Assembly: GCF_963676685.1 (NCBI RefSeq)
Contig: NC_092353.1
Span: 31,558,001 to 31,622,000, forward strand
Length of the DNA stretch: 64,000 bases
Direction: 5' to 3'
From: Mytilus edulis
Lineage: Eukaryota
Shown: positions 1,870 through 54,931 of the stretch, piece by piece
Numbering within the stretch: position 1 is the first letter of the stretch
How the letters are laid out: every line of letters begins with the position of its first letter
Notes under the pieces: model-generated
Seen by the model: the letters and a program-made list of their open reading frames with translations, nothing else
What the model was told of the DNA's origin: nothing
Database searches by the model: none
Made by a program: the position numbers and the translations under genes

Positions 1870-2078
1870 TTACATTGGTGCTTCACATAAAAGTTTATAA
1901 CGAGATTCACACACACTGCTATTCCATTTCCGGTTACGTAGATCAAGGCATCGTTTTTCATGTTTCACAGCAAATGACCTCCCACGGTTGTCATCAAGCT
2001 TTATAGAAGCATCGTTTATCCAGCGCCAATGATGGAAGTTAACATTGAAATGTGCACCCAGCCAAACACGTTCAGACC
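1870..2078 (-). CDS. Second terminal C-type lectin exon (candidate alternative last exon 8b of gene B)
   Basis: Acceptor tttttgaag| in phase 1 reads (W)SERVWLGAHFNVNFHHWRWINDASIKLDDNRGRSFAVKHEKRCLDLRNRKWNSSVCESRYKLLCEAPM*. It has the WLG, WxW, C, W..C and LCE CTLD motifs, with AATAAA just after the stop (1863-1858). Confidence 0.75.
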
Positions 2079-2487
2079 CTTCAAAAACCATAATACATTA
2101 ACGTATAACATAAGCAGAATTCATTGTTCAATGCAATGTTTTTATTGACATATCACTCTATGCAATATTTCAATTTTGATCTAAAAAATATCAAAATTAG
2201 TTGATTATTAGTTAATTAACTCTTATCATTATTTTCATTGTTTTTCGAATGACTGCTTTGTCAGCTTAAGACATCATGACTAGAAGATGAACGCGAAATC
2301 GCGGTACAATTAGGCAAGTGTTAATATAAAGAGTTTTAAATTTCACGGACAGTACGTCGACTGAGCATGCGCGAAAGCGTAAAAGTCGGACCGATAATGT
2401 CTCCGAAATTGGATATATTTTCTAAACTTGGCGTATTCTGTGGGAAAAATAGTTTCAAAATCTATGATGAGTTTATTCATATCTTAA

Positions 2488-3208
2488 GGTTCCATTAAAG
2501 TCAAAATATAGGACACCTCATAAACAGCTAAACTTTGCCTGTATTTTTCAACCTATAACGAATAAAGTCATAAACTATGAGAACATATGTTCATTTAAAC
2601 ATACTTAACATATACACACTGTGTAAACTGTAAATAAACTTGCAATTGTTATGTTGTGGCCAAACCGGTTCTTGGGGTGAACACTAAATTTTCAAAAAAA
2701 TCTGGAGGCCTGCAAGACGACTTATTTTGTTTAGAATTGGTATGGACGAATACTGTTATATCTAATACAGGGCAAGCTCATGTTGATTTTTTTATAAAAT
2801 GTATTGATTATCGAGTTTCAGTTAATTTCATGTATCTAAGTGAACGAATATCGAAGGTACAATACAGAAATTGGACAGATATGCCTTTAAAACATATGTA
2901 TGTGACAAATCAACATGAGCTTGCCCAGCATTACATGTAACAGTATTCGTCCATACCAATTTTAAGCAAATTAATTCGTCTCGTAGGCCTCCAGATTTTT
3001 TTGAAAATTTGGTGTTCACCCCAAGAACCGGTTTGGCCACAACATAACAATTTCAAGTTTATTTACAATTTACACAGTGTGTATATGTAAGGTATGTTTA
3101 AATGAACATATGTTCTCATAGTTTATGACTTTATTCATTATAGGTTGACAGATACAGACAACGTTTAGATGTTTATGAAGTGTCTTATATTTTGACTTTA
3201 CTGGAACC
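2488..3208. mobile_element. MITE with ~300-bp TIRs and TTAA target-site duplication (Kolobok-like by termini)
   Basis: TTAA|GGTTCCA...TGGAACC|TTAA. Arms ~2488-2790 and ~2907-3208 are reverse complements, which is why the two ORFs at 2656(+) and 3040(-) have nearly the same translation. Confidence 0.85.
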
Positions 3209-3939
3209 TTAAGATGGTCTTTGCAGAATTAGAAAGTTGAAATGAGTTGTACTTTTTTTATCCGCACAGAAAAGAGTTCGAAATGCCAAAATATATATTA
3301 AAAAGTCTTATCTTTATCCAAATGCACTAGCATTTTTGTGGTTTCATCTAAAAAATGACCATGCATTTTAAATAATCTTATTCATAAATTGGTTGGTCTC
3401 GACTGAGCATTTGCATTTGGTTTTCTTGAATTATTCATTTACTTTTTTTTGTCAGACTGATGATTGTGATTAGAACACAAGTTGGTTGGGTGTTCAATGT
3501 GTCGATGTAGACTTGTCAGTTAGTATATTGAATGTCCAGCAATACCGATTTCCAAGTCTAACTTAACTTGAGACTTGTACTAAATGCATAATATGTTAAA
3601 GTTGCATAGTTTATAGACAATTTTGATACACAATAATAAACCAATTGGAACATCAACGTTTGCTAGACAATACATTTATTAAACTTAATGAATATGTTGT
3701 AGAGCAAAACGTCAATTGTGTTGATTTTAGTTCCGGTGTATATGTTTTTTTGTTTTTTTGTTTTTTTTTTAAATCAATACGATTCTTCACAAAATAAGAT
3801 TTTTCATGACCAACAATTAAAAAAATGTATACTAGTAGCTAAGTTTCCAATGTTTGTAAAACACGCTCTTTTCAATGAAACAATGGAGTCTATTCTATAT
3901 TCAAATACAAAAAAATCCAGTTGTTGATGATTTTGTTCC

Positions 3940-4340
3940 AATTGGTGAAGTTGAAATCATCCCTTCGTGAATTTTACGAACGCTATCACAATTTAGTTGA
4001 CTGTTATGGAATAACCGTTTCACAGATTATATCGGATATGTTCCTTGTGTCGACACTAAAATTCCCTTCCCTTTTCACGAATGTGACCTACCGAATTTGA
4101 CTATTTACCGGATTTGTAATAAAATGAGCAACATGACGGATGCCACACGTGGAGCAGGATATGCTTACCCTTCCGGAGCACCTGAGATCACCCCCAGTTT
4201 TTGGTGGGGTTCGTGTTGCTTAGTGTTTAGTTTTCTATGTTATGTCTTGTGTACTATTATTTGTCTGTTTGTCTTTTTCTTCTTGGCGTTTTCAGTTTAT
4301 TTTCGATCTATGAACTTTGGTATCTTTCGCCCCTCTTTTA
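3940..4340 (+). mobile_element. 3' fragment of Penelope-like retroelement (RT end + 3' UTR)
   Basis: Closely matches the reverse complement of 39804-40215 (ATGGTGAAGTTGAAATCATCCCTTCGT...GGAGCAGGA.TGCTTACCCTTCCGGAGCACCTGA...GGTATCTTTCG). Confidence 0.8.
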
Positions 4341-8300: not shown

Positions 8301-11300
8301 TTTTACTGTGTCATCATTATCTGCGGTTAGATGATGCCTGAGCCAGCACAAAAAGGTTTAACTCCACATAATTATATATGTGCCTCTCTCAAGTAAGAAG
8401 TCTGTATTTCTTGGTTCGGGTCTGATATATCTGGTTTTCGTTTAATTTCACGTAAATCAGGACGTCGATTGTTCGTTGAAAATGTGTCTCATTTTATCAT
8501 ATGGGGCCTTTGATAGTTGACCTTGCTTAAGGGAATGTTATTTATATTATATATTTGTTGATAATTACACTAGTTTCCATAGTTTCCTTCATAGGTTGCA
8601 CTTTGCAAATACAGCTGTTTCTCAAACCACGCATCTTTTGGGGAGATATACAATATTCAATGATAATTTGAATTGTTGACATACTGGTTCCCATATATGA
8701 TCTCTTTGTTTCATCTCATAGAAACATAACTTGAGACAGTTACCAGTATAAAAGCATACTATTGCGGTGAGTAAGTAGGCAAAAAGTAAAGGAAGGGGTG
8801 GTTCACAATTTTAGTGTAAGTTTAAACACTTACAAGTTCTGGGCATTTAATGTTGAAAAAATGCCGTATGTTGTGACATTTGAATAGAATAGTAGTGCAT
8901 ATCAACTTTCTATTCTAGGATATAATTGGTTCCTTTTTCCTTTTTCCTTTTTCGATATTCAAATTTTGAAAAATATTACAAGTCCAAACTAAAAATTTGT
9001 TTTCCTTCAAAAATTTTTTTCCTCAGAATTTTTTTTTCCTCAAATTTTTTTTCCTCAAATTTTTTTTTTTCCTCAAATTTTTTTTTCCTCAAAATTTTTT
9101 TTCCTCAAATTTTTTTTTCTCAAATTTTTTTTCCTCAAAATTTTTTTTCCTCAAATTCTTTTTTCCTCAAAAAGTTTTTCAATTTTTTTTTTTCGTTTCC
9201 TTATTCGGTTTCTTTTTCCTTATTCGGTTTTCATTTCCTTATACAGTTTCTATTTCCTTATTCGATTTCCATTTCCTTATTCGATTTTCATTTCCTTATT
9301 CAGTTTCTTTTTCCTTTTTCAATGTTTATTTCCTTTTTCAGTTTCTATTTCCTTATTCGGTTTCTATTTCCTAATTGGATTTTCATTTCCTTATTCGATT
9401 TCCATTTCCTTATTCGATTTCCATTTCCTTATTCGGTTTCTATTTCCTTATTCGGTTTCTATTTCCTTATTCAGTTTCCATTTCCTTATTGGATTTTCAT
9501 TTCCTTATTGGATTTTCATTTCCTTATTGGATTTTCATTTCCTTATTCGGTTTCTTTTTCCTTATTCGGTTTCTATTTCCTTATTCAGTTTCCATTTCCT
9601 TATTGGATTTTCATTTCCTTATTGGACTTTCATTTCCTTATTCGATTTCCTTTTTCGATATTCAAATTTTGAAAAAAATTACAAGTCCAAACTGAATTTT
9701 TTTTTTCCTTCAAAATTTTTTTCCTCAAATTTTTTTTTCCTCAAAATTTTTTTCCTCAAAATTTTTTTTTCCTCAAAATTTTTTTTTTTCAAAATTTTTG
9801 TTTTCCTCAAATTTTTTTTTCCTCAAAAAGTTTTTCAAATTTTTTTTTTTCGTTTCCTTATTCGGTTTCTCTTTTCTTATTCGATTTTCATTTCCTTATA
9901 CAGTTTCTATTTCCTTATTCGATTTCCATTTCCTTATTCGATTTTCATTTCCTTATTCGGTTTCTTTTTCCTTTTTCAATGTTCATTTCCTTTTTCGGTT
10001 TCTATTTCCTTATTCGGTTTCTATTTCCTTATTTCCTTATTCGGTTTCTATTTCCTTATTTCCTTATTCGGTTTCTATTTCCTTATTGGATTTTCATTTC
10101 CTTATTCGATTTCCATTTCCTTATTCAATTTCCATTTCCTTATTCGGTTTCTTTTTCCTTTTTCAATGTTCATTTCCTTTTTTGGTTTCTATTTCCTTAT
10201 TGGGTTTCTGTTTTCTTATTGGGTTTCTATTTCCTAATTGGGTTTCTATTTCCTTATTGGATTTTCGTTTCCTTATTCGATTTCCTTTTCCTTATTCCAT
10301 TTCCATTTCCTAATTCGGTTTCTTTTTCCTTTTTCAATATTCATTTCCTTTTTCGGTTTCTATTTCCTTATTCAGTTTCTTTTTCCTGATTCAGTTTCCA
10401 TTTCCTTATTGGATTTTCATTTCCTTATTGGATTTTCATTTCCTTATTCGGTTTCTTTTTCCTTATTCGGTTTCTATTTCCTTATTCAGTTTTCATTTCC
10501 TTATTGGATTTTCATTTCCTTATTGGACTTTCATTTCCTTATTCGATTTCCTTTTTCGATATTCAAATTTTGAAAAATATTACAAGTCCAAACTGAATTT
10601 TTTTTTTCCTTCAAAATTTTTTTCCTCAATTTTTTTTTTTCTCAAATTTTTTTTTTCATTAAAAATTTGTTTCCTCAAAATTTTTTTTTTCCTCAAATTT
10701 TTTTTTCCTCAAAAAGTTTTTCAAATTTTTTTCTTCGTTTCCTTATTCGGTTTCTCTTTCCTTATTCGATTTTCATTTCCTTATACAGTTTCTATTTCCT
10801 TATTCGATTTCCATTTCCTTATTCGATTTCCATTTCCTAATTCGGTTTCTTTTTCCTTTTTCAATATTCATTTCCTTTTTCGGTTTCTATTTCCTTATTC
10901 GGTTTCTATTTCCTTATTCAGTTTCTATTTCCTTATTGGATTTTCATTTCCTTATTGGATTTTCATTTCCTTATTCGGTTTCTTTTTCTTATTCGGTTTC
11001 TATTTCCTTATTCAGTTTCCATTTCCTTATTGGATTTTCATTTCCTTATTGGATTTTCATTTCCTTATTCGGTTTCCATTTCCTTTTTCGATATTCAAAT
11101 TTTGAAAAATATTACAAGTCCAAACTGAATTTTTTTTTTCCTTCAAAATTTTTTTCCTCAAAAAGTTTTTCAAATTTTTTTTTTCGTTTCCTTATTCGGT
11201 TTCTTTTTCCATATTCGATTTTCATTTCCTTATTCGGTGTCTATTTCCTTATTCGATTTCTATTTCCTGATTCGATTTTCATTTCCTTATTCGGTTTCTT

Positions 11301-14300
11301 TTTCCTTTTTCAATATTCATTTCTTTTTTCGGTTTCTATTTCCTTATTCGGTTTCTATTTCCTTATTGGATTTTCATTTGCTTATTCGATTTCCATTTCC
11401 TTATTCGATTTCTGTTTCCTTATTCGGTTTCTATTTCCATATTCGGTTTCTATTTCCTTAGGTAGCACTCCACAGTTAAAAAATAAAATTAAAAATGAGC
11501 CACAAAATGTTTTATCATCTCCTATTCCTGGATTTCTAATACATTAACGTAACTGTTTGTGTTGTACATGTGCATATGTATGTAATCAGTATCTTCCATA
11601 GATTTGATTTTCAAAAGTGAAAAGGGTGAAAATTAATTCCTTTTATGTGTATCCATGGCAACATTCTGCATTTATTTCCCATAAAATATTGCAAAAAGGG
11701 GGGTGAACATGTCACATTTCACCCAAAAATTTGGATCAAACTAGAATTTCAATGCCTTTGAGTGATACCTTTTCAGAAACTGTTTCCCTAAATCTTCCTA
11801 ATGATCAAATAAAAAATGGGTGTCTTTCGTCTCATTTTTTCGTAAAATCTAATCACAAAGTTCGTGCGATAAAAAGTTGGAAAAAAAACATTGCAATAAT
11901 TGCCGGACCAGTGTATGGTAGGGACATGCAAATACGGACTGTCATACAGAAACCAGCCTATATTAGATACATTACATAACCTTGATGTTCATATAAACCC
12001 AATACAAAGATTATTTTAATACTCAGCTATCCAAAAATGAATTTTATTGCACACTAGCTCTCATATTTGAAAAATTCACAGGGGCCAAAATGCGAAACTA
12101 CACATCTAACTGTGGAGTGCTACCTTATTCGGTTTCTATTTCCTTATTCGGTTTCTTTTTCCTTATTAGGTTTCTGTTTCCTTATTTGATTTCTTTTTCC
12201 TTATTAAATTTTCATTTCCTTATTCGGTTACTATTTCCTTATATTTACAACTATCAAACATCAACACACACCAAACTGGATGTAATTGAAAGATATCTAG
12301 AGGTCAATATACAGGCTCGAACAAAAGACAAAAAAGGAAAAATATAGCGAGCTTTTGGGGATGAAGATGTAGTAAAGACCAAATGTCAGTTTTAGTCGGA
12401 TATACTTTAATGTTAGTCTTACATGTTGTTCTGGAACTCATTCCTCATTTATTCGTCAAGTGATCATCATTTTATATTGTTAACGTTTCATTGCGTACAT
12501 CGCTTAATGTGCGCCAGTTTTAGAGTTTTATACAGGACAGTGTAGGAATCCATGTTACTTTCCCCTTTCTCTGAATAACGAAAACTGCTCAGCGGGTCAT
12601 GTGCACAACTACAAGGAACATTCAGCGGACAGTCACACGTTCTTCTTCTTCTTCCGGTAAGCGGCCACCGTCAACTGGTTGTCCAAAGGAACAATTCATG
12701 GCTAACCACAGCGTGAGTTACATTTAAAACATTACAAATTTTGTATTTACATCAGCCATGAACTGTTTTAATATCTTTTCTTATGTTATAAAGAAATTAT
12801 GAACATTTTACCGTTCAAACTGTTCGTATCTGAGATGTTACAACTTAATTCCAGACAGAACCCGACGTGTGCAAGAATATTTATCTATTTATTATTATAA
12901 AGAACTTTAACGGCTTTATATATCTACGAACTGTTTATCCGTATATTTTATGGACTTAAATTATCATTGAACACATTGTAAAATTGTATTTATATTTTAT
13001 TTTCAGTTTTTCATCTTTTGGATTGGTAGTAAAATAAAAGTCAGCTCCTGATTGTTTTATCGTTACATTAACCCAGTGATCTGGGTTACACTCACTGGTC
13101 CGGCCAGTACACATGTATAGATGTGTATATATATCATTGATTCAGTGGCGATGGCAAATAGACACTGATAAGTCTTAAATAAAATTTTATAGTTTTGAAT
13201 GTTTCTTCATCAGTTGACTAAAAATAAGTGGAGGTATGTTCTCATTGCCGACAAGAGAGGCGCTCTACCTATATTAATTTGTGCATAAAGCGATTGAAAG
13301 TTGTTAGATACTGAATGCTTTTACCACAAATGCGCCTAAGTTTTAATCTGTGTATATATACTTAAAATACGATGATAAAATTTATGTCTTGTTCAGGATT
13401 TCTGTCAGATCCAACCATGTAGAAGTCATGTTTGTGAGCTATGGTTTTAGTCGATGATGTTCATGAAGGACCTGTAGTACAAAGTATATCACTGGATTGA
13501 GCTCTCTGTCTAAGTGTATCATTAAAGTGCTTTGCTTTGAGCTGAGTTCATTGCGGTGCAATTCATTTTTTGTGAAATAAAGATTTGACAGACAACTCTC
13601 ATGTACAAGGATTTGTCAAAGTAGTATTCATTTTATGTACAATGTATGTAATCACTGTGCTTAAACGGCCGTGGGTAACTTATGTTACTCACAGCCCAAG
13701 ATGTTGAGATGATAGTTGATACGAAATCTACTTTTTGCAACGTTTTTCATGATCGATGTAAATATTGAGAAGACTTTTGAATCAAGAAATCACTTGCCAT
13801 CACTACATATGCGTTAATTTTGACTTCATTTTAGCGCAAGGCCAACTTTTAAAAAAAGCATAAGATGTCCGTAACTTATAAATCAAAAATAATCAGACTG
13901 TCCGTAACTTTATTTTCGGATGTGGGTAACTTTGTTTTCAAAACTGTAAGATTAACAATTTCAACACTTACAGGACAATAAACACTATCAAACCCTTTAA
14001 TTATTACATAGATTTATACAATAACGATATGCTTGAAAAAGCAAACAAGAGTGTCACGGATTTTCCGTTAAATTAAAAAAAAAAATATTCCTGGGATAAA
14101 ACGGGATTTTACGGTACGGCGAAATTGATCTAACATTCTTCTAGCTTTAAAGATTGTTCACTGATGAGTCCTTGGTCGGTGTAGCCGCGGAAACATTGAT
14201 ATCCTTTCCTTTAAATCATGATATTCTGAATTGTTAGTCTCTTCACTATATCTAGTGTGATGTGTTGTTGATTTCGAGAGAAAAAAATGCCAATATCTAG

Positions 14301-17300
14301 GAATAGATGGAAGGCTTTATATTGTTAAACAGGATTTAGTTTATTATAGCAATAAAAGTAGATTTAAAAGCTTCTAAAAGTTTCATTGACCTCAGGGATT
14401 CAATAAGATCGGGTATCAAATCATACATATCTTCTTTAAAGGTTTGGACTGATATATCTATGTATTTCTGCTAAGGATTGTCCTCCGAAATTGTTCTCCT
14501 AATGTCATTTGCATATGTTCACTATTAATTGATTGATCGATTTTTGGTTGCTTAACGTCCAGTGGCAAATATTTCATGCACATCCAGACGGTAACAAGTT
14601 CACAAGACCTACCAAATAATAGAAGCCATCTGGGATGAAGATCGGGGAAATATGGACTGCCACTGGAAATTAATGGTATATCGGATAGGGACAGAAATTT
14701 TGCCTAGCTACAGGCCACCTACGGACCCATCAAAGAAGTGTTGCAAGGGTTCTTAACGTGCCCTCCTTACACGAGGCATCGGATTTAACGTCCCAAATCT
14801 GACCGGACGTGACTGCGTAGTTGATACATCCCGCACAGCCAAACGGACGCCTCACTTCGGCAAGCGTTTTACTGCCGGTCGGGAGAAGACCAAGTGACCA
14901 TATTTCTATTCCCCAGTCACCCTTTGGGGTGTTCACTATTAATGTAATTTCTACAGTTGGAAATGGTGAGATTTATAACCTGCATGTCATGATTTATCAT
15001 CTAAAACTTAAGCAGTAAACAATCTATAAAGTCAGTAGAATGTATAATTATACATTAATTTTGCCGTACAATTTTCTACATAAGAAAATGCCTGTACCTA
15101 GTCAGGAAAATGGCAGTTGTTATCCATTCGGTTAAGTTTTGGATTTTTCCATTTGATAAGGGACTTTCCTTTTTGAATTTTCTTCAGAGTTTAGTATTTT
15201 TGTAATTTTAGTTTTTAATGCCTGTACCAAGGCAGGAATATGGCCGTTGTTTTCTATTCGTTTGGTGTGTTAAATTGAGCTTTTGGCTTTGCACTTCCAT
15301 AAAGGACTTTCCGTTTGAATATTCCTAGGAGTTCGGTATTTTTGTTATTTATCATTTCTTTTTTTTATAATTACATCTACGAATAAAGATTCTTTGAAAA
15401 TTACTGACATCATGCTAAAGTTACGGACAGCCCTATTGGTATAAGGGAAAAAGTTACGGACGAGCTGTTTTGAAGTTACGGACATCATAAGTGTTTTGGA
15501 AAATCGTGCTGTAATCAATTATTTTGTAGTAATAAACCACGTTTTACATTGCAGAGTTTTCTTAAAAGATTTATATAACTTTTTAAGTACTGAACATTTC
15601 TTTTGTATTCATTGTATTATTATCATATAGGAGCAAACTTCCTAACCGAAGCCAGGCGGCTCCATTTTGGGCTGTAGGTAACTTAAGTTACCCACGGCCG
15701 TTTAAGCACAGTGATTACATACATTGTACATAGAATGAATACTACTTTGACAAATCCTTGTACATGAGAGTTGTCTGTCAAATCTTTATTTCACAAAAAA
15801 TGAATTGCACCGCAATGAACTCAGCTCAAAGCAAAGCACTTTAATGATACACTTAGACAGAGAGCTCAATCCAGTGATATACTTTGTACTACAGATCCTT
15901 CATGAACATCATCGACTAAAACCATATCTCACTAACATGACTTACTTCATGGTTGGATCTGACAGAAAACCTGAAAAAGACATGAATTTTATCATCGTAT
16001 TTTAAGTATATATACACAGATTAAAACTTAGGCGCATTTGTGGTAAAAGCATTCAGTATCTAACAACTTTCAATCGCTTTATGCACAAATTAATATAGGT
16101 AGAGTGCCTCTCTTGTCGGCAATAAGAACATACCTCCACTTATTTTTAGTCAACTGATGAAGAAACATTCAAAACTATAAAATTTTATTTAAGACTTATC
16201 AGTGTCTATTTGCCATCGCCACTGAATCAATGATATATATACACATCTATACATGTGTACTGGCCGGACCAGTGAGTGTAACCCAGATGACTGGGTTAAT
16301 GTAAGGATATAACAATCAGGAGCTGACTTTTATTTTACTACCAATCCAAAAGATGAAAAACTGAAAATACAAATATAAATACAATTTTACAATGTGTTCA
16401 ATGATAATTTAAGTCCATAAAATATACGGATAAACAGTTCGTAGATATATAAAGCCGTTAAAGTTCTTTATAATAATAAACAGATAAATATTCTTGCACA
16501 CGTCGGGTTCTGTCTGGAATTAAGTTGTCTCATCGCAGATACGAACAGTTTGAACGGTAAAATGTTCATAATTTCTTTATAACATAAGAAAAGATATTAA
16601 AACAGTTCATGGCTGATGTAAATACAAAATTTGTAATGTTTTAAATGTAACTCACGCTGTGGTTAGCCATGAATTGTTCCTTTGGGCAACGTGTCCGCTG
16701 AATGTTCCTTGTAGTTGTGCACATGACACGCTGAGCAGTTTTCGTTATTCAGAGAAAGGGGAAAGTATCATGGATTCCTACATTGTCCTGTATAAAACTC
16801 CTAAAACTGGCGCACATTAAGCGATGTACGCAATGGAACGTTAACAATATAAAATGATGATCACTTGACGAATAAATGAGGAGTGAGTTCCAGAACAACA
16901 TGTAAGACTAACATTAAAGTATATCCGACTAAAACTGACGTTCGGTCTTTACTACATCTTCATCCCCAAAAACTCGCTATATTTTTCCTTTTTTGTCTTT
17001 TGTTCGAGCCTGTATATTGACCTCTAGATATCTTTCAATTACATCCAGTTTGGTGTGTGCTGATGTTTGATAGTTGAAAATATAAGGAAATAGTAACCGA
17101 ATAAGGAAATGAAAATTTAATAAGGAAAAAGAAATCAAATAAGAGAACAGAAACCGAATAAGGAAAAAGAAACCGAATAAGGAAATAGAAACCGAATAAG
17201 GAAATAGAAACCGAATAAGGAAATAGAAACCGAATAAGGAAACAGAAATCGAAAAAGGAAATGAATATCGAAAAAGGAAAAAAGAAACCAAATAAGGAAA

Positions 17301-20300
17301 TGGAAATCAAATAAGGAAATGGAAATCGAATAAGGAAATGAAAATCCAATAAGGAAATAGAAACCGAATAAGGAAATAGAAACCGAAAAAGGAAATAAAC
17401 ATTGAAAAAGGAAAAAGAAACCGAATAAGGAAATGAAAATCAAATAAGGAAATGGAAATCGAATAAGGAAATAGGAACTGTATAAGGAAATGAAATCGAA
17501 TGAGGAAAAATAAACCGAATAAGGAAACGAAAAAAAAAATTGAAAAACTTTTTGAGGAAAAAAAATATTTTGAGGAAAAAAAATTTTGAGGAAAAAAAAT
17601 TTGAGGAAAAAAATTTTGAAGGAAAAAAAAAATTCAGTTTGGACTTGTAATATTTTTCAAAATTTGAATATCGAAAAAGGAAATGGAAACCGAATAAGGA
17701 AATGAAAATCCAATAAGGAAATGAAAATCCAATAAGGAAATGGAAAATGAATAAGGAAATAGAAACCGAATAAGGAAAAAGAAACCGAATAAGGAAATGA
17801 AAATCCAATAAGGAAATGAAAATCCAATTAGGAAATGGAAACTGAATAAGGAAATAGAAACCGAATAAGGAAAAAGTAACCGAATAAGGAAATGAAAATC
17901 CAATAAGGAAATGAAAATCCAATAAGGAAATGGAAACTGAATAAGGAAATAGAAACCGAATAAGGAAAAAGTAACCGAATAAGGAAATGAAAATCCAATA
18001 AGAAAATGAAAATCTAATAAGGAAATGGAAACTGAATAAGGAAATCGAAACCGAATAAGGAAATAGAAACCGAAAAAGGGAATGAAACCGAATAAGGAAA
18101 TGAAAATCGAATAAGGAAATGGCAATCGAATCAGGAAATAAACTGTATAAGTACATGAAAATCGAATAAGGAAAAAGAAACCGAATAAGGAAATGAAAAT
18201 CAAATAAGGAAATGGAAATCGAATAAGGAAATAGGAACTGTATAAGGAAATGAAATCGAATGAGGAAAAAATAAACCGAATAAGGAAACGAAAAAAAAAA
18301 AAATTGAAAAACTTTTTGAGGAAAAAAAATTTGAGGAAAAAAAAATTTTGAGGAAAAAAAATTTTGAGGAAAAAAAAATTTGAGGAAAAAAATTTTGAAG
18401 GAAAAAAAAAATTCAGTTTGGACTTGTAATATTTTTCAAAATTTGAATATCGAAAAAGGAAATGGAAACCGAATAAGGAAATGAAAATCCAATAAGGAAA
18501 TGAAAATCAATAAGGAAATGGAAACTGAATAGGGAAATAGAAACCAAATAAGGAAATAGAAACCGAAAAAGGAAATGAATATTGAAAAAGGAAAAAGAAA
18601 CCGAATAAGAAATGGAAATCGAATAAGGAAATGGAAATCGAATCAGGAAACGAAAATCCAATAAGGAAATAGAAACCCAATAAGGAAATAGAAACCCAAT
18701 AAGGAAATAGAAACCGAAAAAGGAAATGAACATTGAAAAAGGAAAAAGAAACCGAATAAGGAAATGGAAATTAAATAAGGAAATGGAAATCGAATAAGGA
18801 AATGAAAATCCAATAAGGAAATAGAAACCGAATAAGGAAATAGAAACCCAAAAAGGAAAAAGAAACCAAATAAGGAAATGAAAATCGAATAAGGAAATGG
18901 AAATCGAATAAGGAAATAGAAACTGTATAAGGAAATGAAAATCGAATAAGGAAAAAGAAACCGAATAAGGAAACGAAAAAAAAATTTGAAAAACTTTTTG
19001 AGGAAAAAATATTTTTAGGAAAAAAAATTTGTGAAAAAAAAATTTTTAGGAAAAAAAAAATTTGAGGAAAAAAAATTTTGAGGAGAAAAAAAAATTTGAG
19101 GAAAAAAAATTTGAGGAAAGAAAAATTTTGAGGAAAAAAAATTTGAAGGAAAAAAAAATTTCAGTTTGGACTTGTAATATTTTTCAAAATTTGAATATCG
19201 AAAAAGGAAATGGAAACCGAATAAGGAAAGGAAAATCCAATAAGGAAATGAAAATCCAATAAGGAAATGGAAACTGAATAAGGAAATAGAAACCGAATAA
19301 GGAAAATAGAAACCGAAAAAGGAAATGAATATTGAAAAAGGAAAAAGAAACTGAATTAGGAAATGGAAATCGAATAAGAATGGAATGGAAATCGAATAAG
19401 GAAATGAAAATCCAATAAGGAAATAGAAACGCAATAAGGAAATAGAAACCGAAAAAGGAAATGAACATTGAAAAAGGAAAAAGAAACCGAATAAGGAAAT
19501 GGAAATTGAATAAGGAAATGGAAATCGAATAAGGAAAAGAACATCCAATCAGGAAATAGAAACCGAAAAAGGAAATGAACATTGAAAAAGGAAAAAGAAA
19601 CCGAATAAGGAAATGAAAATCGAATAAGGAAATGGAAATCGAATAAGGAAATAGAAACTGTATAGGGAAATGAAAATCGAATAAGGAAAATGAAACCGAA
19701 TAAGGAAAAAGAAACCGAATAAGGAAAAAGAAACCGAATAAGGAAACGAAAAAAAGAATTTGAAAAAACTTTTTGAGGAAAAAAAAATTTGAGGAAAAAA
19801 TATTTTTAGGAAAAAAAATTTGAGAAAAAAAAATTTTGAGGAAAAAAAATTTTTGAGGGAAAAAAAATTTTGAGGAAAAAAAAAATTTGAGGAAAAAAAA
19901 TTTTGAGGAAAAAAAAATTCTGAGGAAAAAAAATTTTGAAGGAAAAATTTTTTTTAGTTAGGACTTGTAATATTTTTTAAAATTTGAATATCGAAAAAGG
20001 AAAAAGGAAAAAGGAACCAACTTGTGTCTGGTTAATATTTCACGAAACTTCATAGTAAAAGTGTCACAGTTTAAGCCCCAAAGGGAGTTCCTCTGGGAAA
20101 TTGCATTGTCTGTAATAACAGAAATGCAATCTATGGCTGTATGACAAAAAGAGACTGTAAAGAAAAATAAATGCGGTTAATGACAACATTAGAACGTCAG
20201 TTGACCAGATTTTTTTTAAATCTATCAACAGGAAATATTGCATTGCCAAATTTGTACAATTAGACAATTGAACTAGCAACCGTACATTTCAGATTCAATC

Positions 20301-31612: not shown

Positions 31613-31764
31613 CAGTGACAATGTATTAACGGTGGTAAAAAGATAATAGTAGTTATAGCTTTTTTTTGACATACAGAACTTCTTAGTATAAGTTCTTCGT
31701 AGTCTATATCACTAAATCGTATGATGGGTAATGCAGACAAAGCAACCTTTCTGCACAAATATAT

Positions 31765-35700: not shown

Positions 35701-38700
35701 TCTCATCTAGAATTTGCCTTCGAGCTCGATATTTTTGTTTTATTTTTTTAATGAGTCAAAGAAAAAAGTAATTGTTGATAATAGTTGCATAAGCTAATGT
35801 TAGTATAGGGCTAGAGAGAAACAAAAATGATAGGATATGTGAAAAAACATGTGTCCGGAATAGTTAACCAGGCTCGCCCCCTGGTTAAAAAAATGAAAAG
35901 CCAATATAAATGTATCTGGGCTTCAAATTAACAATTGCTTAAACAAAACAGACACCGTCGTCTAAAGAAAAAGAAAAAAGAGAACAGATACAAAGTGGGT
36001 TATGCGCAACCCTTAGTCGAAGAGCAAAGCACAACATCATGGCAAAACACCAACCAAGAAAGAACAAGAATGTGTCCTCAGTACACGAATGCTCCACTCG
36101 CACTTTCATTTTCTATGTTCAGTGGACCGTGACATTGGGATAAAAACTCTAATTTGGCATTAAAATTAGAAAGATCATATCATTGGGAACATGTGTACTA
36201 AGTTTGAAGTCGATTGGACTTCAACTTCATCAAAAACTACCTTGACCAAAAACTTTAACCTGAAGCGGGACAGACGGACGAACGGACGGACGAACGAACG
36301 GACGAACGGACGCACAGACCAGAAAACATAATGCCCCTCTACTATCGTAGGTGGGGCATAAAAACAGTTCACAAAACAACATAGAAAACCAAAGCATAAA
36401 CCCTAACCAAAAACCCTATAGTTGCTATGAAGGGAATTCAATCCTTGCTGCACTAGTTGTACTCAACATATCACTCATGGCAAGAACCCATTACTTGTAT
36501 GAGACAAGGCGCTTTCCGTGATGTCACAACTATCGAAAAAAAGATGAATGGTAGTCTACTACATGTATATCATATCCGTTGTAATATGTGACACAGATCT
36601 TCCTCAACGTTAAAACAAATCATGATAGCGTCCCTATAACTGTCGACAAGAATAATTCCATTTCCCCTTTAAACATTGATTCCATTAATTCCTTCAGCAA
36701 CTCTTAATCAAGAAAAAAGATGATGGAAACTCCTGAACTATTGTATCAACTTGAGATATATTATCCCATGCGCTTCTGAAATGTTAATATAAAAGAGAAA
36801 TGGAAAGTTCACGATAGGAAAATATTTATTTGTTGTCAAGTTTAGTTCACAATCGACCATCACTTGTAATTTCTTGATGTAAGTAAATTTATGAAGCAGA
36901 CTGTAACTGTTTTCATTAGAATATATAGATAATCTTTGTAATTCTCAAACATTGCATTTTTCAATGTGGGCTCGTCATCTCTTTATTGGGTTCCATAGGA
37001 ATGTGGATTGTCATTTTAATTACAAATCTTCAAAACGTATCATCATATATGGTATCATTAAAATATAATTCAAGGATCACAATTTTTTTTTATATCAGAG
37101 AACTATTGGTTTGCATCAGAGTGTATGATAACAGAAGCTTCACGTTTAAAAAATACCTTTGATTGAGATTCGTGTGTCAAAACCCAAAAAAACACGATCC
37201 ACTTTTGAGAATGTGTTAGTGGATGTATTTGTCGTTATGTAACCTCGACAACATATCGATTATTGCCCTCGAGATAATGGAAACAATGTGAGAGATGTCA
37301 TAAAAGATAAAGTTCACTTACTTGTAGTGTGGTGTAAAGGGGTCGTAGCAATTTGAACTGTTGTAGAGGGTTTGATTGTGGACGTTGTTTTACTAGTTAA
37401 CTTGGTTGCAGATGTAGTAATGTCGTATTTGTTGCATAAATTGGAAGAACAACAAAAGTGTCGTAAATTTCGTTTCTTTTGTGTATGGCAGTACTAAAAT
37501 AGAATCAAAATGTAGTCCTAACAAATTATGTTCCTTCCAATTATTGAAGTAAAATACTAGAAGATATATTCACTAATAAAATGATACATTGTGTGCTGAT
37601 TGAAACAAAAGAGAAAAACAGGGGCTACAAAGTGTCACGAATTGAAACGTTAATTGTAAAACTAATACTAAAAAAAAATGGGAACTGTCAAAAAAAAAAA
37701 TCACCGATACCAGTTTAATACATTACAGTCTTCTATACTATTAAACGAGAAGACCTCATTTTGGGTGTCGCTTCTCTTCTTTCCACAATAAATTAATCAA
37801 CACGCCTCTGTTTCCTATAGGTACAGTGCATAGTCGCATTTGTCATCCATTTATATGATTATTCAGATTGAGTTATTTTGGGAGAAAAACGAGAAAAAAG
37901 GCATATGGATATTGTCCCGTCATTGGACGAAATTTTAAGTCAGATTAGACTTCCGATTTGCGTTTTTCTGTATACTTTGAACATACATATACTACGAATA
38001 AAGTGTATTTTAATTCTATCTGCTATCATTTTCAAGTTTACTATCCACGGCGGTCACAGAGTTTATGAAATGGAGAGGGTCTGTATACTATATCAATTGA
38101 CCACCATGCATCGATTAGTAAACTTGGAATTGAAAGTAAATACACTTTATTTATATAGCAATGAATGTTCATAATATACAGATATAAGCGCTAAAATTAT
38201 TCATGTGAACTTTTGATACCTTTTCTGAAATTCTCCAAAAAAAAGATGTGGTATGATTGCCATGTTGAGACAACTCTCCACAAGAGACCAAAATGACACA
38301 GAAATTAATAACTATAGGTCACCGACCGTCCTTCAACAACGAGCTAAGCCCATACCGAATACTCAGCTTTTAAAGGCCCCGAAATGACGATGTAAAACAA
38401 TTCACACGAGAAAACTAGCGGCCATATTTATGTACAAAAAATGAACGAAAAACAAATATGTAACACATAAACAAACGACAACCACTGAATTACAGGTTCC
38501 TTACTTAAATGTTCATAACATACTAAATGTATGTTCATATTGAAATTGATAGAAAACCAAAAATTGGGAATTTTGGAAATGAAGAAGGAGGGATAAAAAA
38601 ACATTTTTCTGTCCCCAATAACCTATGACTTATGATACATTTGCTGAAATTCTCCAGTCATTCAATATTTTACAAAATTCTCCCAACAACACTTTACATA

Positions 38701-41700
38701 CTTTAAACTACGGTCTGAATGCCTGCGATTTCGCGGGTGTGTTCTAGTATTATCTATTTCATAATTTCAGACAACTAGCTGGTTAACAAGTCCAAATTAT
38801 AACACGCTTACATATTCCCCTCAATACTTATTTTTTCATTTGAATTCTAACACCAGAATTATTTTATGTATAAGAACAGTACGTTTTTCTCTTTTTTATG
38901 TGGATTTATGCTGTTTAATCGTCATACATAACATTGGAATGTTTTAATTAATTTCTGAGATTTAAAACACAACATATATGCATTTAAAAATCTACATAAT
39001 GTAGGTTTTAGGTATCTGAAAGAAGAACAAACAATTCGTCTATATCTATATGAGCCATTAATATCTCCTTTCAAAAAGTGAAATAATAAAAATATTGAAC
39101 TCCGAGGAAAATTCTATACGGAAAGTTCATAAGCAAATGGCAAAATCAAAAGCTCAAACAAATCAAATGATAGATAACAACTGTCATACTATGACTTGGT
39201 ACAGACATTTTCTTATGTGGAAAATGGTGGATTCAAGCTGGTTTATTAGCTAGCTAAACCTCTCACTTGTATGTCTGTTACAAATATCAAAGTATTGTTT
39301 TTTGTGTATAAATGTCATGATGTCCATCAAGGACCCTTGATTGGAATAATAATTTTCTTAATCTTATTCTAATAACTAAAAAGAGAGAAAAATTGAAAGG
39401 TCATCTCTCGAGTAAAAATTCACGTTGAAAAGAAGGGCAAAATATATTAAAGATAAAAAAAAAAAAAAACAACATTAGCGTTATCAATTTTACTACACAA
39501 TGCATATTCGATGATGTCTCACTTTATTGATCAAAGGCAGATAGTGATGACTTAGGGGGATTAGCGTACTATGAAAACAACATGTGAAATCGCTTAAACC
39601 CTAAATGCACACAACAGAAATCTGAACATAGTTGTCGTTTGGTGATGAGGTTCATACGTGTTTCTCTGTTCTCATTTTTATATAGATTAGACCGTTGATT
39701 TTCCCGTTTGGATGGTTCAAGGTGGTACCTAACAGTCCAGGGAGATAACTCTGTAAAATCAGCTAAACGTTTTAATTATGTTGTGTTGTAAAGGGAATAT
39801 TAAAAGAGGGACGAAAGATACCAAAGGGACAGTCAAACTCATAAATCTAAAACAAACTGACAACGCCATGGCTAAAAATGAAAAAGACAAACAAAAAACA
39901 GCACACATGACACAACATAGAAAACTAAAGAATAAACAACACGAACCCCCCAAAAAACTAGGGGTGATATCAGGTGCTCCGGAAGGGTAAGCAGATCCTG
40001 CTCCACATGTAGCACCCGTCGTGTTGTTTATGTGATAACAAATCCGGTAAATAGTCTAATTCGGTAGGTCACATTCATGAAAGGGAATGGGATTGTAGTT
40101 ACGACGCAAGGAACATATCCGATATCATTTGTGAAACGGTTATTCCATAACGGTTAACCAACTCGTGATAGCGTCCGTAAAATTTACGAAGGGATGATTT
40201 CAACTTCACCATTTGGAACTCTTGATTTAATAGCTTCCTTGTGAGCAGCAACCCTCTATCAAGAAAATCATGATAGGAAATGCAAGCACGGGAATATCGT
40301 ATCAATTGGGAGATATATACCCCGTATGCAGGTGCTGCTGGAATGTTGCTACTTAGAAATGGAAAGCTGAAAATCATCTCTTTTGTCGTAAAGTTTTGTT
40401 TTCAACCGACCCTCATTGTCAATTTCTAGATGTAAGTCAAGATACGAGGCCGACTTAACTGTATCTGTGGTATTCTTTATCTCTAGCTCGATGGGATAGA
40501 TGCGTTCCATATAGTCACCAAATTTTGCATTATTTAGTGAAAGAACATCATCTATATAGCGGAAAGTAGAGTTAAAAGATATTGCCAACTCCTTATCTTT
40601 CTTCCTAAGAAGTTCCTGCATGAAGCCAGCCTCATAATAATAAAGAGACAAGTCGGCAAGTAGAGGGGCACAGTTTGTTCCCATTGGAATGCCGACAGTC
40701 TGTTGAAAAACACGTCTTCCGAACGTAACAAATATGTTGTCAATCAAGCATTAAGCTTCTCAATGATCAAAATAAGAATTTGTCAAACTGCTATATAACC
40801 AGTGTAATTTTTCTGATAAAACGGTTGGTTCAATTTTTTGAATTTTTTGTATTTTTGTCAAAGGGTCAAAGTAAATATTTTGTCAAAATTTTATGAAAAT
40901 TGAACGAGCCAAATTAATGTTAGTTAAAGTGTTGGGTACCACCTTAACACTAGTAAGTTTTGGGGCTCTTTATATCTTACTGATCGGTGCGAGCCAAGGC
41001 TCCGTGTTGAAGACCGATATTGACCTATATTGGTTCACTTTAATAATTTGTTACTTGAATGGAAAGCTGTCTCATTGGCACTCATACCATATTTTCTTAT
41101 ATATATGGCTTGCGAACCAATTGCTCAACTCATTTGAAACCGAATTCATACAACAAAAATGAAAAAGTTAGCCGTCAGGAAAACCATGTCATTGGCAAGT
41201 AATACGATGATTTAAATTCATTATTAACCTATAAGAATACATCAAACAGACCTACAAAAAACTGATTGGACGTGATTACCATATATTAATATTGATTTTT
41301 ATGTCGGGTCTTGATTGAAAATTATGAGACGTCTGGTCTAAAATAGCGTACGTAAATGGTGATACATTATAGTGAGCCCGTACATTGTTAATTCAATTAT
41401 TTCTTTTGGACCTTTTGTAATTTAGGTATACATTTTAGTAAATTATGATTCAAATATGAGATTTTGGCCAAATCAATGAACATAAAGTTCACAGGTAATG
41501 AATGTTCATCAAATTCTCAAGCAATCATGTTGGTAAATTCACCGACTGATAATAAAGTGAATAAGCTTAATCAAATTGTTGATTCAGTAAAGTTTATAAT
41601 GTTAAATCTCACGCAAGATATGAATTGAAGACGATCTAAAGAACTAAATATTAAAGCATCAATTAAGTTTGGTTCCAAGTTGTCGAAAGAAAATGTATTA

Positions 41701-43990
41701 AAAAATTGGCTTAAAAATATTTCGTTTGACTCATAATTACTTGTTATGTATCACGCTTGATATCAAAGTATTTCTTACATACAACTTCAAGCATAGAAAA
41801 GTTAAAAAAAATAATAATGTTTTAACTAAATATATAATAACTCTGCTTAATCTCTTGTTTGTGAATTTGTAGTCACGGTTGATTCTTTTATATTTGGAAT
41901 ACTTGATTATCGTACAGTCTGTATTTCCCGTTACTGGATTTTGTAAGGGTAAGTTTTAATATTTTTTGGAAAAAAATCATGGTAGCCACAAAGCCACCGA
42001 GCACGTTACACTATGTGACTTTGTGTAATGGTAGACATCTTTGTCTACCGCATAACACTTTTCTATGTACAAATGCCCTATGTTAAAAAAAAACCTTTTA
42101 TGTGGCGATAGAAGAACTCACTTTACAAAGAATTCAAAGTTCTTCAAACCACACATATACAAATATATACATACCACATTATCTGCACAACCCAACTTGT
42201 AGGAAAACTGGAAATTGCTGTTTACATTTTCTGCTGTTATACACACCTAAGTAAGTAAACATAATTCTATAGTACAGATTTATAAGGGTTAACGCTTATT
42301 GAAATCAAATGTGTATTTAACATTTTTCTGTATCATTTCGTAGTTATCGATTTGTTAAAATGTACTGCGAGTCATTTTTGTAAATAATAAAATCCCCCAT
42401 ATATTGAACTCCGAGGAATTTCAAAACGGAAAGTCCAATCAAATTGCAAAATCAAAAGCTCAAACATATCCAACAAGTGCATAACAACATTATTTCTTCG
42501 TTCATTGAATAGTCCGAGTCTTTAATCGCATTATTGGTGGTGCATATAAAGCAGGTGATACTTACGCTTCCGTTAGAAACTCGGTCTCGTGTAGTTTTGA
42601 TTTCACGCGATTTTTGCTTACTTGATTTTTATATGTATTTGTGATATTGGAACATCGGTAAACTACCTTCACCTTTGATTTACTTCAGTTGCTTCAGGTT
42701 TACTGCTGCATTGTGTATTTGTTAGTTCTATAATGAACGTTAAGAAAATAAAACGGTCTAGATAGTTTATAAATAAAATACTAAAATAACATCATACCTT
42801 GTCAGATTGGGAACAGTTTTGAGATACATTACACTGGGAAGGATGTTGAACATCATCACAACTGTAGCACTGTAAGCCTGAGATGAAACCAATAAGACGT
42901 ATGTTAAGACATAAGGAGGATGTGACATTGCTTTACACGAGACAAGCTTACTATGTTTGGAGATAACCATTCACTTAATCTTTTTTGTATTTCTGTTTCT
43001 ATATTTCTGTTTTCTCTCTCCCTTTGAAATTCGTGTGTTTTCCTCGTTGTTTGTTTAACCATTATTTTTATCTCCTGAATATATATTTATGAGATTTAAA
43101 CATTGGTAGACTACTGTTTTTACATTTTACATTTTGTAAACCTGAAATTTTCTTTTCAATGGCGGCTAACATATTAAAATGTTGTTCGTTCACAATATAT
43201 ATATATATATATATTCATGTTATTGGTGTTCAAAATGAAATAGAGATTTCATTTCTTAAGAAACGGAACGATTCTAGAATTTAAAAAAAAAACAAATAAA
43301 GTACGAAGTTTGAGAGCATTGATGACCAAAATTCCTTAAAGTTATGACAAATACAGCTAAGGTAATATATTCCTGAGGTACAAAAGCCTTATTATTTAAA
43401 AAATTCCAAATTTTTGTAAACAGTAAATTTATAGATATGACCATATCAATGATAAGTCATGTCAACACAAAAGCCATGCATTTGAGTAAATAACATGCAC
43501 GTACCTGTCAGCTCCTGGAGAGACACAGAGAGCAATATGACCGCTGTAAAAGAGAAATCAGTTGTTGGTGTTATCATCAATAATGTCATTATTTTCACTA
43601 TTATTATTGATGTTAGTACTAGAGCAGTTTCACGAAAGGGGAAAAATAAACGATCCGACAAGAATTGTTTTATATATTGATACCGTTACAAAGAATAAGT
43701 TTAGAACTGTGTAATTCACATTTCGCAATTCATAAAATAATTTTAACCTGTAAAAACATTAGTTAAAACAAAATAAAATAGTTTTCCTCAGTCTGTTCGA
43801 ATCGCATTTTCGATCACTCGTACCTGATGAGTTTAACTTCAATTAGGGTACTAATGATTTGATGAAAAACTAATAGTCAAATGGAACGTTTCTTTATCAT
43901 TCAGTAGGGTGCTTATTTAATGGTTATGTTATTGTAGTAAATCTACATGATATAGTAAATAAGATTTTTACCTAGACAAAAATGTTCCAT
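32520..43990 (-). CDS. Gene A: secreted three-finger (Ly6/uPAR) domain + Thr-rich linker + His-rich C-type lectin protein, 8 coding exons, 267 aa
   Basis: Exons 43990-43972, 43543-43505, 42877-42798, 42246-42175, 37493-37322, 35521-35409, 34532-34439, 32734-32520. All introns are GT-AG with phases 1,1,0,0,1,0,1 and the exons sum to 804 nt with one stop. Protein: MEHFCLAVILLSVSLQELTG-LQCYSCDDVQHPSQCNVSQNCSQSDKVCITAENVNSNFQFSYKLGCADNVYCHTQKKRNLRHFCCSSNLCN-KYDITTSATKLTSKTTSTIKPSTTVQIATTPLHHTT-INHHYDCNGKHYYRWNGHGYCILSYTSQWKVDSHGHDVDPCIQLHMKMITLETDQEHDAVVHFVRAIYKYQGTVWLGAKFYPENNTRWHWLYNNHGISAHNKHWESRTEEQEHQCLGLHGDKWGSDDCTQHYPHLCEKVL*. Every exon has a counterpart in gene B. Confidence 0.88.
34439..34532 (-). 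CDS. Gene A exon 7
   Basis: tttcag|DPCIQLHMKMITLETDQEHDAVVHFVRAIYK+T|gtaagt. Confidence 0.88.
35409..35521 (-). CDS. Gene A exon 6
   Basis: ttttag|(I)NHHYDCNGKHYYRWNGHGYCILSYTSQWKVDSHGHDV|gtaagt. Confidence 0.87.
36063..36361 (+). mobile_element. pearl/MgE-like (Helentron-associated) non-autonomous element
   Basis: Second copy of 6817-7128, with (GACG/GAAC)n and a terminal hairpin ATGCCCCTCTAC...GTAGGTGGGGCAT. Confidence 0.75.
36430..36960 (-). pseudogene. Decayed Penelope-like RT 3' fragment
   Basis: Aligns by eye with 40100-40480 (TCATGATAGCGTCC, ATCAACTTGAGATATAT, AGAAATGGAAAGTTCACGATAGG = PIVNFPF on the minus strand). Confidence 0.6.
37322..37493 (-). CDS. Gene A exon 5 (LU C-terminus + Thr-rich linker)
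   Basis: ttttag|YCHTQKKRNLRHFCCSSNLCNKYDITTS...LHHTT+A|gtaagt. Confidence 0.88.
37729..38747 (+). mobile_element. Non-autonomous Helitron
   Basis: 5' TCTTCTATACTATTAAA; 3' hairpin CCTGCG attt CGCGGG followed by TTCTAG|T, the canonical CTRR end. Carries an inserted repeat at ~38240-38510. Confidence 0.75.
39721..40943. mobile_element. MITE (TIR GGTGGTACCYAACA) interrupted by a Penelope-like fragment
   Basis: TCAA|GGTGGTACCTAACA...TGTTGGGTACCACC|TTAA. The flanks rejoin into the common repeat seen intact at ~31870 and ~58190. Confidence 0.8.
39804..40749 (-). mobile_element. 5'-truncated Penelope-like retroelement: RT core/thumb (ORFs 40747-40349 and 40377-40099, frameshifted) + 3' UTR
   Basis: Motifs QTVGIPMGTNCAPLLADL, FRYIDD, YLDL, LYDKRDDF and PAYGVYISQLIRY. 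The ORF ends after the thumb with no C-terminal GIY-YIG, consistent with the Naiad-type layout. ATTAA flanks both ends. Confidence 0.88.
42175..42246 (-). CDS. Gene A exon 4
   Basis: acttag|VCITAENVNSNFQFSYKLGCADNV|gtatgt. Confidence 0.87.
42798..42877 (-). CDS. Gene A exon 3 (LQCYSC)
   Basis: tctcag|(G)LQCYSCDDVQHPSQCNVSQNCSQSDK|gtatga. Confidence 0.87.
43505..43543 (-). CDS. Gene A exon 2 (signal peptide)
   Basis: ctcttttacag|(A)VILLSVSLQELT+G|gtacgt. Confidence 0.8.
43972..43990 (-). CDS. Gene A exon 1 coding part (MEHFCL)
   Basis: ATG GAA CAT TTT TGT CTA G|gtaaaa; paralogous to 28588-28570. Confidence 0.72.
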
Positions 43991-54900: not shown

Positions 54901-54931
54901 AAACAACACGAAGATCTACTTTAATTTAGAT

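Follow-up and report, generated by a model that had tools for sequence, protein, structure and literature searches.

Ly6/uPAR domains (LU, the three-finger domain) and C-type lectin-like domains (CTLDs) are each well known. Among the closest described systems to the genes treated here are molluscan LU fusions: in molluscs, a 2026 survey of LU proteins from invertebrates (Acta Naturae, PMC13719153) records LU domains joined to C1q, fibrinogen, Ig and MAM, which it reports as lineage-restricted, non-standard architectures of unknown function. The window analysed here, a stretch of 64,000 nucleotides of the Mytilus edulis genome (RefSeq assembly GCF_963676685.1, contig NC_092353.1, positions 31,558,001 to 31,622,000), carries two paralogous genes, A and B, of which each encodes a signal peptide, an LU domain, a stalk and a CTLD, without a membrane anchor. 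This architecture rests on sequence, transcripts and profile matches. Taken overall, the locus is best explained as part of a Mytilus family of secreted, soluble LU-stalk-CTLD proteins that would serve as an extracellular bridge, a reading to which we assign a probability of about 0.6.

In the literature searched, no description was found of the LU+CTLD architecture or of the family accessions, and the CTLD is a new LU partner within a theme already reported for molluscs. An earlier reading of this DNA, made from the sequence only, had known of no characterised LU+CTLD protein. That statement stands in so far as no paper was found, but it is weakened by the catalogued proteins described below and by the analogous LU fusions.

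Gene models and domain architecture

The window was compared with itself in translated frames and scanned for the motifs LxCYxC, CCxxxxCN and WLG[AG], and the minus strand was read around each segment. The self-comparison revealed two colinear sets of similar short open segments on the minus strand, and the three motifs fall inside both sets. These sets are the paralogues A (28603 to 5154) and B (43990 to 32520), with eight coding exons each. On this shared strand B is the upstream gene, and 3.9 kb separate its stop codon from the start codon of A. The exon sizes are 19 (or 34)/42/80/72/190/107/94/218 nt in gene A and 19/39/80/72/172/113/94/215 nt in gene B. The intron phases of the two genes are the same, all introns are of the GT..AG type, and the exons are flanked by a pyrimidine tract-AG acceptor and a GT(A/G)(A/T)G donor. 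The exons are as follows.

Gene A exon 1, 28603/28588-28570, minus strand: start at ATG 28588 (MERCLI, 19 nt) or at the in-frame upstream ATG 28603, which is the choice of RefSeq (MCMCTMERCLI); donor GT; matches the N-terminus of XP_071136705.1.
Gene A exon 2, 27570-27529, minus strand: 42 nt, codes for the hydrophobic signal-peptide core and ends in ...SGSVT/G.
Gene A exon 3, 25806-25727, minus strand: 80 nt, LU part 1, LKCYTC...CSQPGQ (Cys 1-4); RNA joint 23568/25727 in runs X1 and X2.
Gene A exon 4, 23568-23497, minus strand: 72 nt, LU part 2, VCIQAENVNDDFRFSYKLGCGGIQ (Cys 5-6); RNA joints on both sides.
Gene A exon 5, 21986-21797, minus strand: 190 nt, LU part 3 (YCHG...CCSTDLCN, Cys 7-10) and the 42-aa Thr/Ser/Pro linker; RNA joints 21986/23497 and 20562/21797 in X1, X2 and X8.
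Gene A exon 6, 20562-20456, minus strand: 107 nt, CTLD part 1 (EHDCRGHGYYLWNHKCYY...).
Gene A exon 7, 6319-6226, minus strand: 94 nt, CTLD part 2 (DPCKEHHMHM...).
Gene A exon 8, 5371-5154, minus strand: 218 nt with stop, CTLD part 3 (WLGG...LCETWSH*); an AATAAA overlaps the stop codon; Lectin_C 32.6 bits.
Gene B exon 1, 43990-43972, minus strand: 19 nt, MEHFCL+G; matches the N-terminus of VDI17070.1.
Gene B exon 2, 43543-43505, minus strand: 39 nt, signal-peptide core AVILLSVSLQELT/G.
Gene B exon 3, 42877-42798, minus strand: 80 nt, LU part 1, LQCYSC...CSQSDK; Toxin_TOLIP positions 1-26, E 6e-4.
Gene B exon 4, 42246-42175, minus strand: 72 nt, LU part 2, VCITAENVNSNFQFSYKLGCADNV.
Gene B exon 5, 37493-37322, minus strand: 172 nt, LU part 3 (YCHT...CCSSNLCN) and a 36-aa linker; CD59 profile positions 80-113, E 8e-4.
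Gene B exon 6, 35521-35409, minus strand: 113 nt, CTLD part 1.
Gene B exon 7, 34532-34439, minus strand: 94 nt, CTLD part 2.
Gene B exon 8, 32734-32520, minus strand: 215 nt with stop, CTLD part 3 (WLGA...LCEKVL*); Lectin_C 26.5 bits; 94% identical to residues 137-205 of XP_063404579.1.

Exons were searched singly, and whole-protein analyses made use of public proteins that a script comparison had found identical to the spliced models. By this comparison the translation of gene A equals, residue for residue, XP_071136705.1 of M. edulis (P0017, 'uncharacterized protein'), and that of gene B equals VDI17070.1 of M. galloprovincialis (P0010; UniProt A0A8B6D9H9). The two eight-exon genes with shared intron phases and open frames, as claimed in the sequence-only reading, are thus borne out in detail by exon reading, GT..AG splice sites and exact matches to public proteins. 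The low end at 1870 given there does not hold for gene A, whose annotated last exon is 5371-5154; it belongs to a second, duplicated terminal exon at 2078-1870. Nor is the family hidden, as had been claimed: RefSeq, GenBank and UniProt already list its members as uncharacterised proteins, one of them with precomputed Pfam PF00059+PF00087.

The LU domain belongs, by sequence, to the Ly6/uPAR superfamily. Full-protein profile tests of A, B and C (the latter a third gene of the family, see below) were done with P0017, P0010 and P0018, respectively, against the curated Pfam cut-offs of 21.2 bits for Toxin_TOLIP, 33.9 for CD59 and 22.6 for Lectin_C. Toxin_TOLIP is matched end to end (positions 1-72/72) and above its cut-off in all three proteins (A 22.8, B 29.9, C 23.6 bits). 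The CD59 profile exceeds its cut-off in B (40.7 bits) and stays below it in A (25.5) and C (27.4), and the UPAR_LY6 profile is under its cut-off in A, B and C. Single exons already give parts of these matches, LU exon 1 covering Toxin_TOLIP positions 1-26 and LU exon 3 CD59 positions 80-113. In A and B the ten LU cysteines occupy mature positions 3, 6, 15, 21, 28, 46, 52, 64, 65 and 70 and are followed by N71; the LU domain of C is one residue shorter, and that of a fourth gene, D, has an 11th Cys (LRCFCC). Over its whole length the domain aligns with snake three-finger toxins (long neurotoxin 1, cardiotoxin V, WTX). The complete 10-Cys LU domain claimed earlier is therefore confirmed by the end-to-end Toxin_TOLIP match and the cysteine spacing, and a three-finger fold is supported by the sequence profiles.

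Likewise by sequence, the C-terminal module belongs to the family of C-type lectin-like domains. Lectin_C matches the full proteins with 43.4 (A), 33.5 (B) and 35.8 bits (C), and the three last exons taken alone (5371-5154, 2078-1870 and 32734-32520) reach 26.5-32.6 bits, which is also above the cut-off. Each CTLD has six Cys in the long-form pattern and WLGG or WLGA at the start of the last exon, and the earlier claim that a CTLD is present holds on all three counts (profile score, cysteines, WLG motif). A profile of the family compared with solved CTLDs found CD209b (E 1.3e-8) and also KLRB1, CD302, CLEC6A, Ly49 and DC-SIGN. In the profile alignment the EPN of CD209b corresponds to S-E-E-type, non-ligand residues and its WND to WRS (A), WGS (B), WVT (C) and WAS (D). 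Gene A does contain the letters 'EPN', but shifted by one position, and its orthologues have ETE or ETQ there. By this alignment to CD209b the EPN/QPD + WND Ca2+ site 2 is absent from the CTLDs of A-D. The CTLD is rich in histidine (11-16%) and its pI is 6.4-6.8. The class of Ca2+-dependent sugar-binding lectins was considered for these domains and excluded because its defining EPN/QPD + WND site is missing.

The N-termini MERCLIVSILLFCSLSGSVTG (A) and MEHFCLAVILLSVSLQELTG (B) run directly into L-x-C-Y, with which mature LU domains usually begin. The signal peptide comprises about 20 residues and the mature chain about 250. Hydropathy analysis gave neither a transmembrane segment nor a glycosylphosphatidylinositol (GPI)-type tail, the highest 19-residue value outside the signal peptide being at most 1.08, and the chain ends 3-7 residues past the last CTLD Cys without a hydrophobic tail; an anchor of either kind is absent on these two grounds. 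In A and B themselves the hydropathy maximum is no higher than 0.85, and 3-4 residues follow the last Cys. The linker between the domains is 36-42 aa long in A and B, with 53-57% S/T/P, and shows a weak match to the Pfam Mucin profile. Over the family its length rises from 36 (B) and 42 (A) to 57 (C) and 83 residues (D), at 43-57% S+T+P. Signal peptide, Thr/Ser-rich linker and the lack of an anchor were thus read correctly from the DNA. The stalk is probably O-glycosylated. A 42-nt segment of the gene A linker (21853-21894, minus strand) is repeated in some RNA contigs (X1), and the orthologues from M. galloprovincialis and M. trossulus have a matching extra 14-residue unit of the TTVSPT type, from which it follows that the repeat number of the stalk varies by allele or species.

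The sixth intron of gene A, between CTLD exons 6 and 7, measures 14 kb and holds a foldback of about 11 kb (8926-20020) that consists of satellite arrays in inverted orientation, with opposite GC and AT skews. Its inner arms (12123-12523 / 16801-17201 and 12995-13422 / 15945-16372) are 98% complementary and its outer arms 76-88%; splicing and annotation of gene A nonetheless extend across this foldback. A fragment of a reverse-transcriptase-like open reading frame (ORF; 40349-40747, minus strand) lies in intron 4 of gene B, and a transposon-derived segment is common to the two gene regions (3918-4280 / 39876-40236, 70-80% translated identity). Upstream of gene B there are tandem arrays at 49040-49952 (62 bp x 15), 53217-54905 (24 bp x 70), 54933-55265 (29 bp x 11) and 58806-59257 (51 bp x 9).

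Transcripts, family members and alternative products

Sequencing runs that contain 6-10% of the sampled words of 20400-25900 come from seven studies under two organism labels. This share is what is expected of spliced RNA, since exons make up about 8% of that interval. Four runs (X1, X2, X8, recorded as an RNA-Seq library, and X21) were aligned to the gene A stretch, and the junction evidence covers the joints of gene A from the LU exons to CTLD exon 1. RNA contigs skip from 20562 to 21797, which joins CTLD exon 1 to LU3/linker, in X1, X2 and X8 (three studies); from 21986 to 23497 (LU3 and LU2) in the same runs; and from 23568 to 25727 (LU2 and LU1) in X1 and X2. The skipped segments end in CT..AC on the plus strand, that is GT..AG on the gene strand. 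One RNA contig of 688 nt runs from LU2 through the linker to CTLD exon 1 and continues for another 332 nt. No second copy of the LU3/linker exon, such as a retrocopy would leave, occurs anywhere in the genome. Furthermore, the 283-aa family members P0003 and P0019 come from contigs with a recorded length of 912 nt; as the full ORF fits on so short a contig, these are intronless cDNA. For gene A, the earlier claim that LU and CTLD exons are joined is hence confirmed by RNA contigs from three studies, with the joints at the predicted bases, and since contigs cross the joint between LU3/linker and CTLD exon 1, the refuting case of no LU-CTLD transcript is excluded. Two intronic repeats (21504-21687 and 22608-22791) show a very high RNA contig depth that originates elsewhere in the genome.

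Genome searches with single exons showed that the family has at least four loci on the same chromosome, A, B and two more:

Gene C, G000:C10:31547164-31554337 (L001:9164 to L002:6337), plus strand: ends 3.7 kb before the start of the window and converges on gene A.
Gene D, G000:C10:36235765-36244572 (L003:9765 to L004:8572), plus strand: 4.6 Mb away, first exon not located.

Gene C equals XP_071134129.1 apart from the start; with the start codon in the signal-peptide exon it has seven coding exons. Gene D has the same exon order, phases and exons of 80, 72 and 94 nt, and exon order and phases are shared by all four genes. Among A, B and C the LU domain is 66-73% identical (dN about 0.2) versus 42-43% for the CTLD (dN about 0.5), and the divergence of the CTLD is spread over the whole domain, last exon included. 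The dS values are saturated or >1.2 throughout and dN/dS is <1 wherever computable; because of the saturated dS between paralogues, positive selection on the CTLD cannot be judged.

Orthologues occur in M. galloprovincialis, M. trossulus, M. californianus and M. coruscus. Neither a profile search with the family alignment nor an exhaustive search with the last exon of gene B found relatives outside Mytilus; the latter gave five proteins at E<=0.001, namely P0001 of the LU-CTLD family and four short or unnamed ones. A search with the LU region of P0012 retrieved the query itself as sole candidate. The ESM Atlas shows Lectin_C together with Toxin_TOLIP/UPAR_LY6 in two clusters from molluscs, of 57 and 70 members; we treat these as a lead only. 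The older M. edulis model CAG2253730.1 (P0006, 387 aa) is a chimaera of B without LU exon 2 and the LU exons, linker and first CTLD exon of A. The annotation can be corrected at three points: this older model merges B and A, the current RefSeq model of B ends before the lectin exons, and an intact duplicated terminal exon is unannotated. The latter is:

Extra terminal CTLD exon C3b, 2078-1870, minus strand: duplicated; acceptor phase of exon 8; 68 codons and stop; its own AATAAA; Lectin_C 26.7 bits.

C3b is located 3 kb downstream of exon 8 of gene A and has all CTLD landmarks intact. Its amino acid identity to exon 8 is 35%, with dS at about 1.4, and the resemblance sets in about 80 nt within the intron. 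That the frame is still open after so much divergence suggests that C3b is in use as an exon, and it could be an alternative 3' exon of gene A. None of the annotated proteins found in the searches carries C3b, though these would have retrieved an isoform sharing the first 215 residues.

Products without the lectin domain are annotated for gene B. The M. edulis RefSeq protein XP_071136959.1 ('CD59 glycoprotein-like', 129 aa) corresponds to exons 1-5 of gene B plus read-through into intron 5; reading through the exon 5 donor (37300-37322) adds Ser-Lys-stop. In isoform X2 of M. galloprovincialis exon 6 of gene B (113 nt) is skipped, which shifts the frame and leads to a stop after 15 out-of-frame residues. 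In view of these lectin-less LU-stalk products, the lectin head of gene B may be optional.

Proposed function and rival explanations

The mechanism that we tentatively propose, at less than even odds and by analogy with other LU fusions, is that of a soluble two-headed adaptor. The three-finger end, which evolves slowly and is held by five disulfides, would attach to a conserved protein of the mussel (a receptor or a component of the matrix), and the histidine-rich lectin-like end, which evolves faster, would have a variable target other than a classical Ca2+-dependent glycan. This binding may depend on pH or metal ions, and the glycosylated stalk would hold both heads apart. As the LU-C1q and LU-fibrinogen proteins of molluscs suggest by analogy, the setting would most likely be humoral or mucosal recognition.

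Several observations weigh against the bridge reading. In one sample, the deep raw-read run X21, no reads lie over the gene A exons. The RNA joints are those of gene A, and the M. edulis RefSeq model of gene B ends after exon 5. Compared with D, identities are 38-46% for LU versus 46-48% for the CTLD, so that the contrast between the two domains is gone. The constant LU and variable CTLD described in the sequence-only reading therefore stand among A, B and C, fail against D, and fail also in the limitation of the variability to the last CTLD exon; a constant handle with a variable head is real for the local trio, but it is no family rule. The structural models are poor as well: AlphaFold2 gave a mean pLDDT of 39.7 for full-length P0010 (7-sequence alignment) and 46.1 for the LU-stalk protein P0014 (15 rows), the alignments being too shallow. 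A Foldseek comparison of the low-confidence LU-stalk model with the PDB does point to three-finger proteins, which make up 41 of the 44 rows listed (CD59 takes ranks 1, 2 and 6, and PSCA, bucandin, uPAR, Lypd6b, cobratoxin, GPIHBP1 and Lynx2 are among the matches listed), but these matches are weak (best E 0.2, TM <=0.61).

An unlikely alternative role is that of a biomaterial protein of byssus, periostracum or shell matrix, in which the His-rich CTLD would form pH- or metal-dependent cross-links on secretion into sea water, with the stalk as spacer and LU as assembly module. Coordination of metals by histidine is characteristic of byssal proteins in mussels, and shell matrix contains CTLDs of the perlucin type. 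The histidine content and pI of the CTLD and the missing classical sugar site agree with such a role, as do matches of the family profile to lithostathine and struthiocalcin, two CTLDs associated with mineral, although these matches are weaker than those to immune CTLDs. Among structural relatives the best are in fact CTLDs of the immune type (CD209b, KLRB1, CLEC4/6), and literature searches on the family accessions and on byssus, CTLD and histidine yielded nothing relevant. We regard it as improbable that the family acts in gamete recognition, although fertilisation involves LU proteins (Bouncer, SPACA4) as well as CTLD proteins (Mytilus acrosomal lysins), and restriction to one genus together with a fast-diverging head would suit a reproductive protein. 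Sequence relatives were indeed found in Mytilus species only, and within the trio A, B and C the CTLD has diverged more quickly than LU, but dN/dS stays below 1 wherever measurable, the search with the last CTLD exon returned no named lysin among its five proteins (E<=0.001), and transcripts occur in runs of seven studies.

Two further explanations concern the products rather than their role. It is rather unlikely, though compatible with the other readings, that the working product of gene B is mainly a secreted CD59-like LU-stalk protein, with lectin exons that are optional or being lost in M. edulis. The 129-aa protein is the only one that RefSeq lists for gene B in M. edulis, and the M. galloprovincialis isoform X2 also ends early. 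Yet all three CTLD exons of B are open and have canonical splice sites, the full-length protein is annotated in M. galloprovincialis (as the identical VDI17070.1 and as isoform X1), exon 5 is linked with the CTLD exons in the model from M. trossulus, and the exon-6-skipped form, with its premature stop, may be splicing noise. A wrong merger of separate LU and CTLD genes is hardly credible and is contradicted for gene A. The older CAG2253730.1 is indeed a merged model, but there the merger is of B and A; RNA contigs of three studies cross the LU3/linker-CTLD joint at the predicted bases, full-length ORFs lie on 912-nt contigs, and exon order and phases are common to four paralogues.

A bolder variant of the bridge reading, which we consider a long shot, would make the locus a modular recognition system with one conserved three-finger handle, in which RNA processing gives different lectin heads or none. 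Gene A would alternate between 5371-5154 and 2078-1870, gene B would toggle between LU-stalk and LU-stalk-CTLD, and the heads would be switchable by pH or metal. If so, the two terminal exons of gene A, both old and intact, would supply different binding halves for the CTLD, and target binding by the histidine-rich heads would go through a pH or metal switch instead of Ca2+ and sugar. The secreted LU-stalk-CTLD architecture is a solid finding that lends itself to follow-up, but its proteins are catalogued already, and so far there is no sign of an unexpected mechanism. For bivalve immunologists and LU researchers the proteins form a small, easily expressed target with which to ask for the ligand of an invertebrate CD59-like domain, and a second question is the target of a histidine-rich CTLD without sugar site.

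Comparison with known systems

Similar to CD59, Ly6 and SLURP proteins and to the snake toxins, the mussel LU domain has about 71 residues, L-x-C-Y-x-C at the mature N-terminus, a CC-x4-CN end and ten cysteines, and its profile matches to Toxin_TOLIP, CD59 and UPAR_LY6 extend over the full length. The CD59/Ly6/SLURP proteins consist of single or tandem LU domains, GPI-anchored or free, whereas in the mussel proteins LU is an N-terminal module in front of a mucin-like stalk and a CTLD, without GPI signal. With bivalve C-type lectins and CTLD proteins (PMC10140915, PMC12842671) they share a Lectin_C match above the cut-off, the long-form six cysteines, the WLG motif and secretion, and they fit an uncharacterised class, specific to bivalves, of CTLD proteins that carry additional domains. 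They differ from the bivalve lectins in the lack of EPN/QPD or WND, in the 11-16% histidine and in the N-terminal LU domain; PMC10140915 and PMC12842671 contain no mention of Ly6, uPAR, CD59 or three-finger proteins.

KLRB1, Ly49 and CD302 are among the best solved-structure matches to the mussel CTLD (E 4e-7 to 1e-5). NK-receptor-type and CD302-type CTLDs bind proteins, not Ca2+-dependent sugars. These three are vertebrate membrane receptors, whereas the mussel CTLD is the C-terminal head of a soluble protein. The molluscan LU-C1q, LU-fibrinogen-like, LU-Ig and LU-MAM proteins resemble the mussel proteins in the fusion of LU to a globular extracellular recognition head but differ in the partner, which is a CTLD in Mytilus; the word 'lectin' is absent from PMC13719153. 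With two well-known domains joined in one chain, the transcribed, genus-restricted family from Mytilus extends the molluscan fusion of LU to recognition heads such as C1q and fibrinogen. C1q and fibrinogen-like heads are the two other classic invertebrate recognition modules.

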